A stretch of DNA of 59,139 nt, the filler included, from Trichosphaerium sp. ATCC 40318 (Eukaryota > Protista > Tubulinea): NCBI GenBank assembly GCA_038496445.1. It is 3 parts of 3 records of this genome, joined end to end, with 100 filler letters (N's around TTAATTAATTAA, not from the genome) between each part and the next. Parts side by side here need not be neighbours in the genome. Positions count along the whole stretch, not along the records: positions 48,864 to 59,139 come from JALMLS010000151.1; 2 more parts are not named here. One strand, given 5' to 3'. Of the stretch, positions 48,764-59,139 are shown piece by piece. Under the pieces are notes generated by a model. It saw nothing but the letters and a program-made list of their open reading frames with translations, was not told the origin of the DNA and ran no database searches. Position numbers and translations under genes: made by a program. How positions within the stretch are numbered: the stretch's first letter is position 1; each line of letters opens with the position of its first letter.

Positions 48764-48994
48764 NNNNNNNNNNNNNNNNNNNNNNNNNNNNNNNNNNNNN
48801 NNNNNNNTTAATTAATTAANNNNNNNNNNNNNNNNNNNNNNNNNNNNNNNNNNNNNNNNNNNNAATAAATAAAAATAAATGGCAGCTACGTTTACGAACA
48901 TGCGCCGCGCGTGTTGCGTCGAACGTGAAATTAAATGGGTAAAAAAAAAAAAAAAATGAACAAAACAAAAAAAAAAAAAAACAACCAACTTACT

Positions 48995-50098
48995 CAAAAC
49001 CAAAGATAACATCTCTGTGTTCTCCAATTAGAGTACCCACAATTTTTGTTTCAGTGTTGTGGTTTCCATGGGTACTCACAATCATCCAACCAGGACTTGT
49101 TGGAGCTAAAAAGAGTATTAGAAGTGGCACATCAAATAATTACAACTAACGAAAATACAAACACGTATTTTTCGTGTTAAAAATATGACCGCGAGCTCGC
49201 GGTCGGAAACGAACACATTAAATACGTGTTACGTTCAAAACAGCATGCTTGCAGTCAGTTATAAAAAGACTTTAAAAAAAAAAACGGTTTTTAAAAAAGT
49301 ACACACTTTTTATGTGTACAAAAACCAACCACAAGCTCAAGGTCAGGTACGAACACAATAAATAAGTGTTGTATACCATATACCAAGCAAGCAATCAGTT
49401 ATAAAGCAAGACTTTTAAAAAAAAAAACGGTTTTTAAAATAGTACACACTTTTTATGTGTACGAAAACCGACCGCGAGCTCGCGGTCATGTATGAACACG
49501 TTAAAAGCGTGTTTAAAACCGTACAGCGAGCTCACGGTCTGTAAAAAAAGCAAAACAACAAAAAAAATATTAAAAAAAAAGTACACAATTAAATTGTGTA
49601 CCAAAACCAACCGCCAACTAGCGCGACTAACAAACACGCGATATACGTGTTCGAATGCCGCAGCGAGCTCACTGTTGGAAATTAAAACAAAATAAAACAG
49701 TGTGAACCAAAACCAAACGAAAAAACAACACACACGCGTTCTGCGTGTTACGAAACCCTCGTTTGGGTTTGGTTCTACCATGCAAAAAAAACCGCATGGT
49801 AACGAAAAAATCGTACACATAAAAACCGTGTACAAAAACTGTCGGTTTTTTCCTAAATTTACTTGAAAAATTAGGATTTTTGAAAAAACCATTTAAAAGC
49901 AAAAAAACCCCCTTTATTAGTCTTTAAAAATTAAAATAAGACTAATAAAGGGGGTTTTAAAAAAAAAAGAGTAAAAAAGAGGTTAGTACCTAGTACTCTC
50001 TTCCTCCTGAGCCTGGGCTTACCATCAGCTTCTTTGGAGGGCTCATCCTCATCAGAAAACTCAATGTTTATGAGAGAGAGGTCTTCATCTGAGCTCAT
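48995..50098 (-). CDS. Orphan gene, first two exons (MSSDEDLSLINIEFSDEDE.. | PTSPGWMIVSTHG..)
   Basis: ATG 50098, donor near 49990, ~880-nt intron holding palindromes, open exon ~48995-49107, next donor GTAAGT. Confidence 0.55.
49187..49674. repeat. Intronic ~140-bp tandem units with the 18-bp palindrome GACCGCGAGCTCGCGGTC
   Basis: Perfect copies at 49187-49204 and 49470-49487, CpG-decayed copy at 49327-49344, partial copies near 49524 and 49661. Confidence 0.85.
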
Positions 50099-52484
50099 CC
50101 TTGATTTATGAAAAGTCAAAAAAGTAAAATGAGGCTTTTTTTCCCCCAATAATTGCGTTGAGAAATAGACAGGAAAATTTCGTGTTTCGAAATGTGAATC
50201 GGAAATTTCGCCTGTTTAAAAAAAGTAAGAAAAAAATGAGAATTTGACAGTTTGCAAGATTGTTGATGAGGTCCTGGGTTTGTAAAAAACCCTATCTTGC
50301 TGTAACCCTACAGGGAGATTGTATGTGCAAAAAACATAAAAAAAAGCCAAAAAAATCGAAAAAATTTTACAACAGGGTAGAGTAGTGTACAAAAAAATAC
50401 AGTTGGTACATACTCCTAAACCCTAACCCTAGTATCAGTGAATTAGGGTTTTGTACACTAGGGCTTAGGGGTTTAAACCCTAATGTTCGCTGATTCTCAT
50501 TCAGTGAACCAACTACCAAAAAAGGCAAGTCTTGCTCATTAAGCGAAAATATACACTAAATATTAAAAAACTTAGTACTTCTACAAAAACACCTCATAAC
50601 TATACACCAAGGCAATATAAATGACTCATACTTTATAGACAATAAATCAAGGCATATTGACATAAGATACATCAAGCGCTACATGTATGATGATATACAT
50701 GGCGAGTAATCAAAGCAACCCTAATGGATAAAACTATAAAATGGCAAAAAATATTTATTTGCTATCACTACTAAATACCATGATCATTTAGAACTAAATC
50801 ATTGTTATTTCTATGTAGCTACAATATAATACTTTATAAAAATATATTGTATGATAACATAGATGATATTAAAACTGTTATTTATATCATTTTTTAATAC
50901 AAATAGCATTTTTGCATGTTGACATTGAGAAAAAACCTTTATTTTAGCACTAAGATGATATATTCTTTTATAAAAAGTATGTTATATATCTAATAATCAA
51001 ATATAAAAACAATTATGTATGTAATTTTAACATAAGTGGCCTTGATAGGCCTATATACCACAAAAAAAAATAAAAAACCTATAATTCTCAATAAAACATC
51101 TGTGTTGCTGCATTAAAAACATCTACTGTATTCATGTTTCACAAGTCATCAACCACCATGCTTGAGATCATGTATGTGCAATAGATTGCAAATATATGAT
51201 ATAAGTCCAACAAAATAGATGAATTACATAAACACACACCAAAAAAATTATTGGCACTATAAAAAGCTCTATGCCAATATAATTTTACATCCATGATAAC
51301 ATTTTCAAATGGATAGAAAGTAGCCATATAACAAAGATATATGGCATCAAGAGGTACCATGGAGGCAAAGCTGTTTTTGGCAAAAATGGCATTTTTTTGG
51401 TTTTTTTACCATAAAGTATGATTGTAGGTAGCTTCATCAAAATCATCTATGTATATATAATAAATTACAAGATGATGCCATGATGTTTGTTAATAGGAAA
51501 ATGAAGAATCGCACACCATAGATAATATATGGGGGGCCTGGTGCATCAACGAACAATATCATCATTTTTGGCCAAAAAGGGCACGAACTCAAAATGCTTC
51601 TAAGCCTTCAAATCCAACCATCATTTTAGTTTTTAAGTAGGCTTATATAAAGTATATTAAGATGGCATAACAATTAAAGTAAATATTCATAGGGGGTATG
51701 GTGAACGACCACTAAAAAATGAAAAAATGGAGGAAATTTCTACATTTTCCTGATTTTGGATTGCATATATGCCACCCCACCAAATAAACTATATACCTCT
51801 TATTATTACTATGCCAAGTACTATATATCCTCAGTCGCCATCGATCCATCATGTAGTTGGCCGTGACCATTTTCGAAAATATATGCTATAAAAGGTAAAA
51901 CATATAAATTAATTAATAACTATTCATGATGGATAGGTATGACAAAATAGATGAATGCATTGGATTCCTTGAGCAAAATGGCATATATGTATATGTATAA
52001 GTCAACTATAGGTGATCATGTAACTACGGCCTCAAAGCAAAGATGTATCCAATTTTTTGCTAAAAAAATCCCATTGGAAAAATCAAAAAAAATCCAAAAA
52101 TCAAAGAATGGCTCACCAAATCGACATATACTGCTATAAAATCCTACAAACCACCAGCGATCGGGTAATTTATGCCAATGTATAAGGTACAAAAAACGAA
52201 ATTGGCTTAAGCAATATGATAAGGTATGCGATAATGCATGGTTCAAATTAAATCCCTAACCCTAACCCTGCCAACATTTGCCAATATTGTTGTTTGGGAT
52301 TTTTTTACAAATCCCAAGAAATTCCTTATTTTAATGGAATATAGCAGAAATCCCATCAAAAATCCTATTGAAAATTCAGATTGCTTAGGGATTTTTTCCA
52401 CAATTCCGTTAAAATCCTTAAAAAACACGGAATTTAACAGGATTCCAGAGGAAAATCCCGTTTTTAATTTACTACTGATGTGCT

Positions 52485-53959
52485 ATGCTTTTTGGTGGAC
52501 AGAGAAGACAAATAGTTGCCAACATCAAGATAACTGATCTCAAATTTGGACCCAACAACACATTGGAATCTACATTAGGCATTGAAAAAAGACCAAGGAA
52601 AAACAATGCCTCAGCACTTTCGGTACGTGCATTCGACACGCGTTTCGCATGTCGTTCGGGTTCCGAATTCAGACCGTCTTTGAACAATCATATTTCTTGT
52701 TGTTGAATATTTGCATTTTTTTCTCCTTTTTCTATTTTCACAGTCAAACAAACACTACAGGCTACATGTTCGACGCATGTGCGGACGCGGCCCGAGCTCG
52801 TACGATACGTCACAAGTACAACGCATGTGCGGACGCGACCCGAGCTCGGACCTCCCGTTTACACGCGTTGACCTGTGCGAGCGCACTTTCTCAAATGTCT
52901 TTTTATATAGTACTAACTTGTCTTTATCACACAGATGGACACCAACTTATTCACCTATGTTGCTCTTTGGTTCAACTCTTACAGAAAGCTATTGCTCATT
53001 CCTGAAGCTGAGCATCCTGTCATTCAATTTTGGGTCAACTTGAATGGTTCTGCAATGTCCAACAACTCAATAGGAAAAATGATCAAATATGTTGGCAAAG
53101 CCTTCAACCCCCACATCACCAACCTGACCTGCTCCACTGTCAGACACCTGACCCTAACTAAACTCTATGCTGGAGAATTTGCTGAAAGATCTAATTTGAA
53201 CTTTCCTCAACTTGGCAGAGACATAACAAGACTGTTGAACACTTCTTTGGCAACTGCAGAAAAGTACTACAATGACTATGACTCTCAAAAACAAGATGAG
53301 TAAGTTACTTAAGACAATCGAAACGCATGTTCGTTCGTTAGTTCGTGTGTCACGTTGGCTCCCCCTTCTCATCTTTTTTGTGTAGGAATACTTTGGCCAT
53401 GATCAACAGAGAAGTTTTAGGAGATCTTGCTGATACAATCCAACCAAGTTCAGTCCTTGTCAACCTTGCCCAAAAAGCTGTGTTGCCTTTGATAGAAAAA
53501 GATATTTTGTCTAGACCAATTAGAGTAACACCCAGCTTAAGGCAAAACATGAGTATAGAGGAAGCTTTTTTTTATGATCCTTGTGGCCAACATATTCACT
53601 TTGACAAAGGTATGGATCTGAAATTTGTGGTTTATTTGTTGTGTTTTCACTATTAACTCATTTGGCTCTTTATTTAAGATGAACACAAAATATCTAAAGT
53701 GTTGTCCATATTTTCGAATGGCGATGGCATCTTAACATGCAAAGTCATGTTGGCGAACGACGAAATCACTGTTTGGCCATTTGATAGAGTCAGCCAACAC
53801 AACATAGCTGCATTGAAAGCTTGCATCAAGGATTCCTTTACCAAATGGCAAACCAACTTTGCCAAAGTAAAAAATGAGCTTGAAAGCACAACAAAAAAGC
53901 TGGTAGAAGCAGAAACCAAGCTGTTGCTTCAAAAACAAGAAGAATTGAATGTCAATTGA
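52485..53959 (+). CDS. Tyrosine recombinase catalytic domain (spliced, apparently 5'-truncated) with C-terminal extension
   Basis: Exons 52485-52622, 52935-53299, 53386-53609, 53679-53959 join in frame. Motifs GGQRRQI (R), EKRPR (K), FWVNLNG, TCSTVRH (R-H), LLNTS..AEKYY (Y). Confidence 0.75.
52770..52890. repeat. Intronic CCGAGCTCG(G) array in YR intron 1
   Basis: Cores at 52792 and 52840 (48 bp apart). Confidence 0.85.
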
Positions 53960-54086
53960 AACAAAAAGCTACTATAATGAACAACAACAGTCAACAAACA
54001 ACTAAACAACTAATAAAAACCAAAACTTTTTTTTTTAATAATTATTTTTTATTTGCTAGCTACTAGGTATCATTTGCCATAAACTT

Positions 54087-57000
54087 TTATTCCTCCATTT
54101 GATCAAACAAATCTTGGCTGTTGTTGAAGTTCGCATTCGTTTGCGTGTCGTCGGCGGTCGGCGCTTGCTCGTCGTCTAGGTTCGCATCCGTTTGCATGTC
54201 GTCGGCGGTCGGCAGCTGGCTGTCTGGAACAACTATGTCATCTTGACTATCCTCTTCATCATCATTGTTGTTGTCATCTTTAGACAAGAGCTTTGCTTTT
54301 TTGGCCCTGGTGGTCACACCATCAACATTTGCAGGGCCATCTGCCTTTCTTTTGTGTTTCCTCACTACTAATGTACCTCTTCTTTTAGGCTGGGGAACAT
54401 CTGGAGCAATAATATTCTCTGACTGAGGTGGTTGAAGTTGACTAGAAGCTATAGGTGTTACCTCAGCAAGTGGTATAGCATCTGTTCCAGCATTTGTTGA
54501 AGTAATTTGGCCAACAGGTGCAACAGGTTCAACAACAACATTTTCCAAAGCACTTGCAATTGATGGAACACCCTGATTATCTTTTGCAGCCTCATCTTCA
54601 TCAAAAGATGGTGGTTCATCAAAGTCTTCTTCAGTAATGTTTGCAGCTGCAATAAAAAAGGTAAGTACAAATTAAATACAAAGAACAGAGGAAATGAAGG
54701 TGGACGAACAGGTCAACGCATGTAAAGAGGCGTTCCGAGCTCGGAACCAAACTAACAGGTAAAGTGCGTGTAAAGTCGCGTTCCGAGCTCGGAAGGTGAA
54801 CGAACAGGTCAAGCGCGTGTAAAGTCGCGTTCCGAGCTCGGAAGGTGAACGAATAGGTAAAGTGCGTGTGAAATCGCGTTCCGAGCTCGGAACGTAAGAG
54901 AACAATCGATACGTATGTTTAACAACAGCCGTCGAAAAAACAACAGGTATCCTATTATTCTCCATCACCCACAACCTTCACCCACAAACAAAAAAACCTA
55001 TACTCTAACTTATTAACCTACCTTTAAAAAGCATTTTTGCCATCACATTATCTGCTGGAACCACCAATGTAATGTGAAGGTCTTGTTTCACTTTTTTCAA
55101 TGTAACATCCTCTGATGCTCCTGCCCAAACATTCAATCTCTTTCTGGTCACTTTTGTAAACTCTTTCAAAGCAACTAAATGTTCTTTGTATTTCCTCTCC
55201 CTTGTTCTAGGAGTGTCATCCATGAATAAACCTCCATAATTAGACTCAGAGCCAATTGAAGCTGTTTTTGTTGGAGTAGTTGGGGCATTTTGCTCTGTAG
55301 ATGAGGCATCTGGCTTTCCTCCATCTTGGCTTGGATCTTTTGGGCCTGTAGGTATTGTGGTTGGTCCTGTCAAAACAGTACCAGTAGTAAGGTTTGAAGA
55401 AACATTGCTTGAAGTAAGAGCTGGTTCTTTTTCACTCATTTGAGCACCACCAACAGGGGAAGTAGGTTCAATGGGTGTTAAAGGTGCTAAAAAGGGGAAA
55501 AAAGTTAGTTGTGCAAGCTGGTTCGCCGAAAATATACAAACGTCCGTTTGTATGTACCTGGTGGCTTATTGATTGGCTGGACAGTTTGTTGGTTGGTTGA
55601 TTTGTTGGTGTCAGTGGTATTTGAAACAACTGAAGCACCACCAACATTAGAGGAAGCCTGAATGGTTGCCAAAGGTGCTAGAATAAACAAAGTTAGTGGG
55701 ACAACTAGATACAATCGGGCGGCTAACAGCCATGCGCGTGTACCCGGCGGTCCGACGGAGGTTTTATTGGCACCACCAACTGTCAATGTAGCAATCTTAA
55801 TGTTACTTCTTTTGCTTTTCCTTCTTCTTGGAGATTTTGTTGTTGGCTTTGCTTTGGTTAAATCTTCTACATCTGTTTCTCCTGTTTTTTTGTTTTTGTG
55901 GCTTCTGGCATTTTTAGTATTGCCACTTTTAACCTCTTTGAAATGGCTATAACTTTCAATCATCTTTTGCTCCAATGCATCCCCTGTCGAAAACGAGTCA
56001 TTACAAACGATCGCGTGTGCGCGAACGGCGCTACTTAGTCGAATGAAATAAAAACCATCACTTACTGTTAGCTTTAACCAAGTTAGAGTCTGCACATATC
56101 ATAGCCTCCATTGCAGTGTGTGAAAACTGCAATTTGTCCAAGGAGCCCTTGATATTAAAATCATAGTACACTGCATCACTAGTCTTCTTTGGTGTGAACA
56201 ATAGCTCTGGATCATATACCAACAATTGCTTTAATATGCCATCAGACAACTCTGCTGCATATTCAGACAAAGACCATTCATCTTCAATATCAACAGGGGT
56301 TTCATCATCTATCATGTGGGTCCACCCAAGATTTTTCAGCTCTGTTAAAGCTTGTACTGTAAACTTTCTGCAAAGGTTATACCTGACAAAAAAATAGTTT
56401 TGTGATGTTGTAGGGTATAAACCATGTGTTATTGCTTTGCAAAACTATTCAAAAAAATAAGAGTTGGTGTAACTTTACCATGTGATACTTACTGATATTC
56501 TTGCAGCCAGAGGTAGGTCATTCCAAGCACCATGACTAAAATGCCTGATAGTATATCCTGGTATGGTCTTACTTTGCTACAAAAACCATGAGCAACAGCT
56601 TTTTTTTGACAAACAAGGAACTAAAAACCCACTTTTATAAAACAGATTTTCATAAATGTAATGCATGTAAAATGACGTTCCGAGCTCGGAGCGTACGCGA
56701 ACATACGTCATGCGTGTAGAAAGACGGTCCGAGCTCGGAGCGCCCGCGAACATGCGCAATGTGTGTCGAACGACGATCCGAGCTCGGAACGCCCGCGAAC
56801 ATGCGCAATGTGTGTCGAACGACGATCCGAGCTCGGAACGCCCGCGTACATGCGCAATGCGTGTCGAACGACGATTCGAGCTCGGAACGTTCGCGTACAT
56901 ACATTATGCGTGTATAAAAGGGCATAATAAATAAAATACACTTACCCTTTTATCCACCACAGAAGTCATTTGTGTCCTCACTATTGCAGGCACAGGCATG

Positions 57001-59139
57001 AAAAACAATCCAGATTTGATGATCTCTGCTGTTTTGCTTTCACTCAGACCACCAAATTTACCTTTTAAACTGTCTTGTGTCTAATAATCAAAACAATTAG
57101 TTATGTCATTAGTAAAAAAAATAATGTTCAGGGGCTAATAAATGGACATACCAAATGTATTAATTTTGTTTTATATTTAATAGACCTTGCAATACTCCAC
57201 TTCCGTTTGTTTATCCTGTTGTCCTTTACCTTGGGATCTGCATGATAGTCATATTTCAGGTTAGCAAGTGTCATGAATGTCCCCAAGGCAGCTATGCACT
57301 TATCCACCAATGTATGCTTTGTGACTTTGGTTTGGTCTTCATTCAGCTTGGAGCAATATGTTGATATGGCATTTAAACCCTTAAAAGGATTAAACCATGT
57401 CAACTGCTTTCCCAATTTAAAATTGCTGACAGAGTTGGTCCTGGCATTTGTTGGACTTGGTTTGCTAAAACAAAAATGTCAGGCAAGCGCAACGTCTGTG
57501 CGACTGCGTTCGATCGTGACGTACCAGAGAGCTGTCAACAAGCAATGAGCTCCATCAACAACACCAAACCCAGGTGTTTTTACCCCATTATAGATCACAG
57601 GGTTATATGTCAATATCAAAGGTTTGAGATGAGTATCTTTTAGTTCCATCTTGTCCAAGATATTTCTAGTGTTTACTGATCTGACATCCATAAAACACAC
57701 AATATGAGACATTTCATCAGCTTTTGGTTCAATATCCCCAGGAAGTAGTAGGTCTTCTACTTTCATGCCATCTTTAGCTGCTGTATGATTTAAAGCTTCT
57801 AGATCCTTTTTATCAATCAAACACAGATTCATTGACTCATGTGCTTTAGTGCAACTAATATAGAAGTAAGTACAATATCAAAGAGTAAACGAAAATATAC
57901 ACATGCGGTCGGCATGTTCGTTCGGACGTACGACATGAATTCATCAAAATCAGCAGCTTGCTGAAAGGATAGTGAGTTTCTGGCATACACCATCAACAGT
58001 GCAGCATAGTATTCAGAATCTGTCAGATTTAATGCTGTGGCCTCATACAATTGCTCTGTCCAAATAACAATCTGCCAATATAATATTCTTTCCACACAAG
58101 TATTATACCAAGTCTGTTTGTCCATTTCTCCATCATAGGCCATAGGCTCCCACCACTCAGAAGGAGCTTCATTAAAAGTATTTATCACTTTGTTTAAGAA
58201 TGTTGCCAAAGAGTCTTTGGTATCAAAGTGAGGAAATCTTATCTAAAAAAAACAAACAATGTCAGCATCAACAATTCTGATAAATAAGTAGACTAAAAAG
58301 GCATGTGTGCTAACCTTCCGAGCTCGGAACGCTACCGGACAAGAAAACGCGTGTAAGTATACGTTCCGAGCTCGGGACGTGCGTTTACATACATAGACCT
58401 GTTTGGATTTCGTTCCTAGCTCGAAACGCTATCATAAAAGAAAAATGCATGTTAACATTGGTCCCGAGCTCGGACCGCTATCACACAATAAAAACGCGTG
58501 TAAGGTATAGGTTCCGAGACTGGGACCCTACGTGACAAGTGTGTGTTTATGAAAGGGAAAATACATACCTTGAACAAATTTGATAGCTGCTCTGGATCAT
58601 TCAAATCACATGCTGCAGCCAATGTATTTGTAAAACTGAGTGAAAAACTATTGCTCAAAATATTTTCCAATTGCTCTAAAGGCATACTTCTGACATGTAC
58701 TTGGGTAATATCTTTGTCTGGTAAAATTGCTTCTCTAAATACATGTAAATAAAACATTGAAAGGAACAAAAGTATATGAGAATCTAACAAAGCAACATAC
58801 AAAAACCCAATGGCAATACCATCCTCTTTGCCCAACAGAGTGCCAATAGCTTTCTTCCAATTCAAGCGTGAATTTATATTTGCCAATATAAACCAGCCAA
58901 TACCTTTGGGCTCTGGAACTAGTGTAAAAGTTAGTCATAGTCAACAATAAACAAGTTAAAATAGAAATATCAACTAAATATATAAAACAATGTATGTAAA
59001 CGTACGTTCCGCGCTCGGAACGTATCCAAACAGGTCAACGTATGTAAACGTACGTTCCGAGCTCGGAACGTAACCAAACAGGTCAACGTATGTAAACGTA
59101 CGTTCCGAGCTCGGAACGTATCCAAACAAGTCAACGTAT
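54087..59139 (-). CDS. Large orphan multi-exon gene (start beyond window) with a weak ParB-like motif and low-complexity S/T/P/D-rich C-terminus
   Basis: Open exons join across GT-AG introns (e.g. FMS|CTKAHESMNLCL). KPLIL..GFGVVDGAHCLLTAL at ~57530-57625. Stop 54087-54089, convergent with the YR gene. Not all junctions verified. Confidence 0.6.
54710..54895. repeat. Intronic palindrome array, 4 units
   Basis: CGTTCCGAGCTCGGAA cores at 54735, 54783, 54832, 54881. Confidence 0.95.
56660..56915. repeat. Intronic palindrome array, 5 units of 49 bp
   Basis: Cores at 56680, 56729, 56778, 56827, 56876. Confidence 0.95.
58310..58530. repeat. Intronic palindrome array, 5 units with heterogeneous spacers
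   Basis: Cores at 58318, 58366, 58415, 58464, 58514. Confidence 0.9.
58990..59139. repeat. Intronic palindrome array, at least 3 units of 48 bp (truncated by window end)
   Basis: TACGTTCCGAGCTCGGAACGTA cores at 59009, 59057, 59105. Confidence 0.95.

Follow-up and report, generated by a model that had tools for sequence, protein, structure and literature searches.

Phased bipartite palindrome arrays in introns of a tyrosine-recombinase locus of Trichosphaerium sp. and the CpG dinucleotides that surround them

Results

Tandem palindromic arrays lie in introns of two convergent genes

Positions 48864-59139 (JALMLS010000151.1) were examined in a window of 59,139 nucleotides, which joins parts of three records of the genome of Trichosphaerium sp. 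ATCC 40318 (GCA_038496445.1). This piece of ~10 kb of eukaryotic DNA, a single copy, carries a plus-strand gene which, to judge from its sequence, is a tyrosine recombinase related to recombinase-chromodomain proteins, a large minus-strand gene (G3) and, at the left edge, a further minus-strand gene (G1). Tandem arrays of palindromic sites lie in the introns of these genes, and the sites and the CpG dinucleotides around them are the subject of this analysis (Table 1; all positions are those of the window). Gene models were predicted by hand from the sequence, and homology searches were run exon by exon. Joined models served to check reading frames, to count codons and dinucleotides and to look up a short motif. 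The two main spliced models, the recombinase gene and G3, are convergent, and both contained GT-AG introns only and no internal stop codon.

The arrays were recognized by a palindromic core. Nineteen cores were found in five arrays (A to E), of which 14 were perfect, compared with none in 200 dinucleotide shuffles. The core-to-core distances given in a preliminary description of this DNA (48 in A; 48, 49 and 49 in B; 49 four times in C; 48, 49, 49 and 50 in D; 48 and 48 in E) were all reproduced exactly, and the two open spliced models confirmed that all five arrays sit in GT-AG introns, with only the acceptor side of the intron of E falling within the piece. Four of the five (B to E) are held by G3. 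The extent of the arrays had to be revised, as array A begins earlier (~52764) and is joined by a degenerate extra unit in the same intron, and a sixth array, in G1, had been overlooked. In this sixth array the ~52-bp period is nested in higher-order units of 140-143 bp.

Table 1. Genes, arrays and boxes in the piece examined (core and box are defined in the text; aa, amino acids).
Feature	Position	Strand	Core positions	Description
Tyrosine-recombinase gene	52479-53959	+		Exons 52479-52622, 52935-53299, 53386-53609, 53679-53959; 337 aa open; 5' part missing
G3	54087-58918	-		12 exons in the piece; open frame of 1,066 aa, whose N-terminus lies outside it; low-complexity acidic C-terminus
G1	48994-50098	-		Exon 1 ~50098-49990, exon 2 ~49105-48994; off the left edge; read from sequence
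Array A	52764-52876		52792, 52840	Two cores, three boxes; last spacer inverted, B-like; recombinase gene intron 52623-52934
Degenerate extra unit	52636-52700			In the intron of array A; two boxes 48 bp apart around an AATT-centred core variant
Array B	54708-54918		54735, 54783, 54832, 54881	Four cores, five boxes; G3 intron 55021-54647
Array C	56652-56913		five at 49-bp steps, 56680-56876	Five cores, six boxes, period 49; G3 intron 56945-56621
Array D	58290-58530		58318, 58366, 58415, 58464, 58514	Five cores, two degenerate; G3 intron 58568-58243; spacer 58376-58414 is an inverted E-type spacer
Array E	58981-59139		59009, 59057, 59105	Three cores, period 48, cut by the piece edge; upstream of the G3 acceptor at 58919
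Sixth array	49161-49831			G1 intron; 11 boxes, GCGAGCTCGC-type cores, 12-13-bp linkers, ~52-bp period
Four single boxes	50169-50388			Immediately 5' of the G1 start, at spacings of 78, 63 and 62 bp; few CpGs
Single boxes, short introns	53314, 55536, 55726, 56003, 57901 (and one-mismatch 57483)			Each with its own CpG cluster
Single boxes, coding DNA	53735; a pair with a distance of 51 bp, 54133 and 54184			Each with its own CpG cluster

The repeat unit combines two dyads at a fixed distance

The unit of 49 bp comprised a 10-bp core palindrome, CCGAGCTCGG, followed by 11 bp, a 17-bp box of the form ACA-N11-TGT and a further 11 bp; the box was sometimes ACA-N10-TGT (16 bp). The second box that had been described upstream of the core is indeed present at a fixed distance, with 11 nt between its TGT end and the core in 17 of the 19 units and 12 nt in the other two, but it is actually half of a larger dyad, ACA-N10/11-TGT, which is centred between cores. 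Identity between arrays was 1.0 for the TGT and 0.93 for the core, compared with 0.29-0.37 for the linkers and the box interior, and the length of the linkers stayed at 10-12 bp although their sequence was at chance identity. The conserved columns were found to be clustered (P = 0.014); a test of column heterogeneity outside the core was not significant (P = 0.08).

The earlier statement that spacers differ between arrays applies to the linkers, which are near chance identity, but not throughout. The spacers of B and E were 65-71% alike, the second spacer of D matched an E-type spacer in inverted orientation (84%), and the sequence that follows the second core of A matched a B-type spacer, likewise inverted (74%), compared in each case with a shuffled null of 47% and a 99th percentile of 62%. 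Within arrays, spacer identity reached 97%. The similar and inverted spacers indicate that units were copied between introns in both orientations with the geometry unchanged, and the arrays have in part a common ancestry. Changes in the palindrome arms were mostly uncompensated (40, against 3 compensated), which points to a site that would be recognized as double-stranded DNA.

The box is spread across the proposed element

The box is a motif that occurs across the proposed element and is not confined to the arrays. The piece contained 35 boxes, compared with 5.2 ± 2.1 expected, and a strong excess was observed only at the spacing of 11; 32 of the 35 were non-coding, and most were without a core. 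When all six arrays were masked, 13 boxes remained, compared with 4.1 expected (P = 0.007, corrected for 17 spacings), and the single boxes outside arrays had a common inner YGCR consensus which was absent from the search pattern. Both the array with the 52-bp period and the coding copies retained the box. In the last G3 exon (54113-54213), two 51-bp (17-codon) repeats retained a one-mismatch box and 16 CpGs, and the site therefore appears to be encoded within the coding sequence of G3.

CpG dinucleotides survive close to boxes

In exons, the observed/expected ratio was 0.17 for CpG, 1.43 for TpG and 1.50 for CpA, and in introns the CpG ratio was 1.68. Loss of CpG with an excess of TpG and CpA is the signature of methyl-cytosine decay. 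The CpG ratio followed the distance to the box, with 1.8 within 10 bp, 1.25 within 20 bp, 0.32 at 21-30 bp and 0-0.4 farther away. Around single boxes the CpGs were spread over offsets 1-15 with no fixed positions and then fell, giving a zone of ~47 bp, which is close to the array period (about one unit). Outside the five arrays, 63% of CpGs lay within 30 bp of a box, compared with 19% of GpCs, and none of 5,000 random box placements was as extreme.

The same association was observed intron by intron. All 10 introns with a box (a one-mismatch box in one of them) contained CpGs, and all four introns without a box contained none. Two coding CpG clusters (53714-53765 and 54132-54210) also coincided with boxes, and just two CpGs were left unexplained in the 6.5-kb gene region. 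Box variation within arrays was mostly CG to TG or CA, and 36 of the 38 core CpGs were intact.

The recombinase gene and G3

The main exon of the recombinase gene gave two matches among 1.8 billion proteins, P0001 (E = 4e-4) and P0002 (E = 8e-4), both with a C-terminal chromodomain. The upstream exon independently matched the GGQRRQ box of another relative, P0004, which itself matches XerD (E = 1.7e-4), and for a low-confidence model of a further relative, P0003, the matches listed first were Cre, Xer and Tn1549 integrases. Word searches with the recombinase exon, which see similar-length proteins only, returned P0001 and P0004 alone. The catalytic residues were found in order (R in GGQRRQ, K, STVRH, LLN and YY), with the H positions substituted as in the relatives. 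The 5' part of the gene is missing or disrupted, because the frame opens just five codons before the GGQRRQ box and no acceptor is present there. Neither the exons nor the relatives gave a Pfam match to a Crypton- or Starship-type domain (DUF3435, DUF3504). The box and core motif was absent from the loci of the relatives (L121-L125), and viral contigs scanned for related recombinase loci yielded none.

In G3, a VVDGAH motif is encoded by exon 57854-57525, and the Atlas search returned ParB_N with a language-model score of 0.92, in fourth place among the matches listed; a ParB-like identity is on this basis a weak hint and only a lead. G3 as seen, with its N-terminus missing, has two H-x-D triplets only. 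The Walker A motif of a ParA ATPase was not found in G3 as seen, the piece being cut at both ends. Matches to PPR proteins in the G3 search were rejected as sums of sub-threshold repeats.

Discussion

From the geometry of the arrays, the enrichment of the motif, the intron location, the CpG pattern and the family of the recombinase, we infer, with belief and doubt in equal measure, that the arrays are phased sites for an element-encoded protein which keeps non-coding DNA unmethylated in a large tyrosine-recombinase element. The piece would belong to a mobile element of this kind in a CpG-methylating eukaryote, and the arrays would be multimers of a double-stranded site composed of the 17-bp ACA-N11-TGT dyad and the 10-bp core palindrome 11 bp away. 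Each box would be occupied by a dimeric protein that covers ~47-49 bp and is most likely a product of the element itself, with G3 as the candidate; the core would serve as a second or cooperative site, and units packed side by side at the length of this footprint would produce the period. Bound DNA would escape methylation, so that CpGs survive there and decay elsewhere. The arrays would then act as strong anti-silencing nucleation sites, located in introns where coding is undisturbed, and the genes of the element would stay expressible.

The phased protein-binding arrays proposed in the preliminary description find support in the fixed 11-bp linkers, the box outside arrays, the uncompensated arms and the survival of CpGs, with the qualification that the arrays are partly of common ancestry. 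The function of a parS, centromere or iteron that had been suggested for them was not borne out, as the piece contained no parS consensus and no ParA or Rep gene, and the ParB call was weak. The feature, which would be a variant of transposon self-recognition arrays, is more ordered than first noted.

Several points weigh against an element-encoded anti-silencing protein. The proposed element is known here from one copy. For the candidate binder G3, the ParB hint found no support in Pfam, PHROG, NCBIfam, PDB or fold searches (model pLDDT 49), and no methylase motif was found in the 1,066 aa seen. The conservation of the core partly reflects ascertainment, because the arrays were picked by core, and outside the core, with one unit per array, column heterogeneity did not reach significance (P = 0.08). 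No CpG was found near 6 of the 17 isolated boxes, and where single boxes do have CpG-rich flanks, these could be a legacy of 49-bp units that have decayed.

Sites for a host transcription factor, as a genome-wide trait or a co-opted enhancer and not a system of the element, appear unlikely. The motif is also found in G1 and its promoter, which may not belong to the same element, as an AT-rich stretch of 2.3 kb and a break that has no explanation lie between them and the recombinase gene. The core moreover matches the everted CCG-N4-CGG site to which Zn2Cys6 factors such as Leu3 bind. The cores in G1 (GCGAGCTCGC type), however, lose the CCG/CGG triplets while the box stays, and the intron arrays, which recur every 1.4-1.9 kb along the recombinase-bearing block, fit a VANDAL-like build-up of motifs (PMC5735166). 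The arrays might instead serve an episomal or viral form in its replication or segregation, as do the baculovirus hr, sopC or the Epstein-Barr virus family of repeats. In favour are their dispersal in groups of 2-5 palindromic units that have a restriction site at the centre, as in hrs, the weak ParB-like hint in G3 and core arms that resemble parS arms. We consider such a role quite unlikely, as no parS consensus match was found at 3 mismatches, viral, Rep and ParA genes were not found in the piece, and the single exonic boxes with their CpG footprints are left unexplained. Searches with the array pattern gave 0 or single chance matches in viral contigs, one chance coding match in prokaryotic genomes and at least 120 loci in metagenomes, which were unrelated and mostly GC-rich among the matches listed.

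A neutral minisatellite or short repeat family, in which an ancestral 49-bp unit was dispersed and homogenized by slippage and gene conversion and the single boxes are decayed units, would account for the identity of up to 97% within arrays, the 65-71% likeness of B and E, the two inverted spacer copies and the column-variance test (P = 0.08). It is nevertheless very unlikely, since linkers at chance identity keep their length of 10-12 bp, conserved columns cluster (P = 0.014), the methylation-prone CpGs of the core are preserved best of all positions, the 52-bp variant and the coding copies retain the box, and the array introns align within arrays only. A miniature inverted-repeat transposable element (MITE) or an Introner was rejected: self-BLAST aligned array bodies only and the intron ends differed, which argues against both, and no terminal sequences common to arrays or introns were found that would make all arrays pieces of one MITE, the possibility named in the preliminary description. 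That the tyrosine recombinase crosses over at the cores, the boxes being accessory arm sites and the spacers thereby inverted and swapped, we regard as highly improbable. The recombinase gene adjoins, a palindromic overlap would permit both orientations, and the two inverted spacer copies have their junctions at cores; yet exons would be inverted or deleted if introns recombined with one another, whereas both genes remain colinear with open frames. The same pattern also arises by gene conversion between inverted repeats, and most boxes have no core. Least probable of all is an action of the arrays as RNA, in the form of intronic fold-back hairpins, small RNAs or splicing guidance. The folding of introns C and D was much stronger than that of shuffled sequences (z = -6.4 and -5.1), but strong folding is expected of any dyad array, the arm changes are uncompensated, the orientation is not tied to transcription, boxes also stand in a promoter, and no Rfam family was found at threshold. 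A CRISPR- or TIGR-like guide array was likewise rejected, because spacers recur within arrays (up to 97%) and the longest match elsewhere in the piece was 8-11 nt, mostly motif.

The proposed anti-silencing sites were compared with known systems. F-plasmid sopC and chromosomal parS offer fixed-period tandem palindromic units and GTTCC/GGAAC arms, and fixed period, palindrome and arms are all found here. The arms here are, however, 6 bp apart instead of 4, no parS match was obtained in the piece, the arrays lie in eukaryotic introns, and a second dyad is present. Cryptons and Starships are tyrosine-recombinase DNA transposons with an intron-containing recombinase gene and neighbouring genes, an arrangement also seen here, but no matching Pfam domain was found in the exons and the nearest relatives are recombinase-chromodomain proteins.

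Closest in look is PAG3, an accessory gene of Plavaka transposons in the red alga Bostrychia; this ParB-like gene stands beside tandem inverted-repeat arrays, and its product is proposed to bind its own element (10.1101/2025.02.11.637652). Both are eukaryotic elements with palindromic arrays, the ParB-like hint being unconfirmed here; they differ in the mobilizer, a tyrosine recombinase here and a DDE transposase there, and in the intronic, bipartite and rigid 49-bp arrays of the present locus, in which no oxygenase domain was identified. VANDAL transposons of Arabidopsis encode VANC, a protein which reduces methylation and whose binding motifs form tandem repeats in introns and other non-coding regions (PMC5735166). 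The arrays here are also in non-coding parts (32 of 35 boxes; six arrays), and by analogy they may share the anti-silencing role. The motifs of VANC are, in contrast, 8-9 bp long, non-palindromic and part of Mutator-like elements (PMC5735166, PMC10398659), whereas two palindromes at a fixed distance are found here. A VANC-related family was not reported in the family scans, and the local hypomethylation typical of VANC may be reflected here, indirectly, in CpG survival within ~15 bp of boxes. The giant transposon Sola1-1_Ec32 of Ectocarpus carries a ParB-like methyltransferase accessory gene of ~1,100 aa opposite to its mobilizer gene (PMC12477816); G3 is of similar size (1,066 aa seen) and lies opposite to the recombinase gene, but no methylase motif was found in the part seen and the mobilizer differs. 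The mobilizer class differs from that of the VANDAL, Plavaka and Sola systems, of which the locus is at most a putative member. Baculovirus hrs are, like the arrays here, several dispersed arrays of palindrome-bearing units, with 3-8 units of 64 bp in the virus described (PMC4535591). The present arrays are intronic and far denser, and no viral gene was found in the piece.

No description of such an arrangement in a recombinase element was found in the literature, mostly outside subscription papers. The narrower proposal of an undescribed class, in which large tyrosine-recombinase elements use a ParB-derived protein on bipartite parS-like intron arrays as a shield from CpG methylation and a readable evolutionary footprint is left, with the recombinase perhaps acting on the palindromic cores as well, is speculative and rather doubtful. 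The piece nonetheless offers an exact candidate site, a fixed geometry and a sequence record of the likely effect (a CpG zone of about one unit), so that self-protection can be put to a direct test in a third kind of element, one based on a recombinase. Footprints of CpG survival might also help to locate sites of this type in further silenced elements.

Additional features of the locus

A terminal repeat was not found within the 10-kb piece. One sequencing run contained short, scattered pieces at low depth, several of them with few differences, and no RNA run was found. A stretch of ~1.7 kb (50560-52230) was non-coding and very AT-rich (21-36% GC), without an exact box or a clear gene. An AT-rich, partly palindromic stretch (52270-52478) adjoins the point where the recombinase frame opens; a matching other end was not found in the piece, and an insertion, a frameshift or a deletion is possible at this boundary. 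Short CCCTAA (telomere-type) runs were located near the recombinase gene (52254-52269 and 50414-50430) and also in the loci of three relatives (L122 at ~85-105, L123 at the 3' end and L124 at ~2945), and could be the sign of a terminus or of a target site, or a trait of the host.

The last recombinase exon (53679-53959) resembled by eye a degenerate form of the chromodomain of the relatives; BLASTP gave no alignment, and a chromodomain in this exon was not confirmed. In L124, the recombinase-chromodomain gene of a relative is flanked by inverted 15-bp tandem arrays of ~29 copies each (1-442 and 2412-2887). The 5' array ends at an apparent branch site and acceptor; its motif is different, and the arrays are again non-coding.

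The first intron of G1 contained a long AT-rich hairpin (49901-49964) with arms of ~21 bp, which was below Rfam thresholds. In G3, two neighbouring intron-exon junctions (55443-55509 and 55634-55697) were 73% alike along 67 bp, which hints that an exon was duplicated locally.

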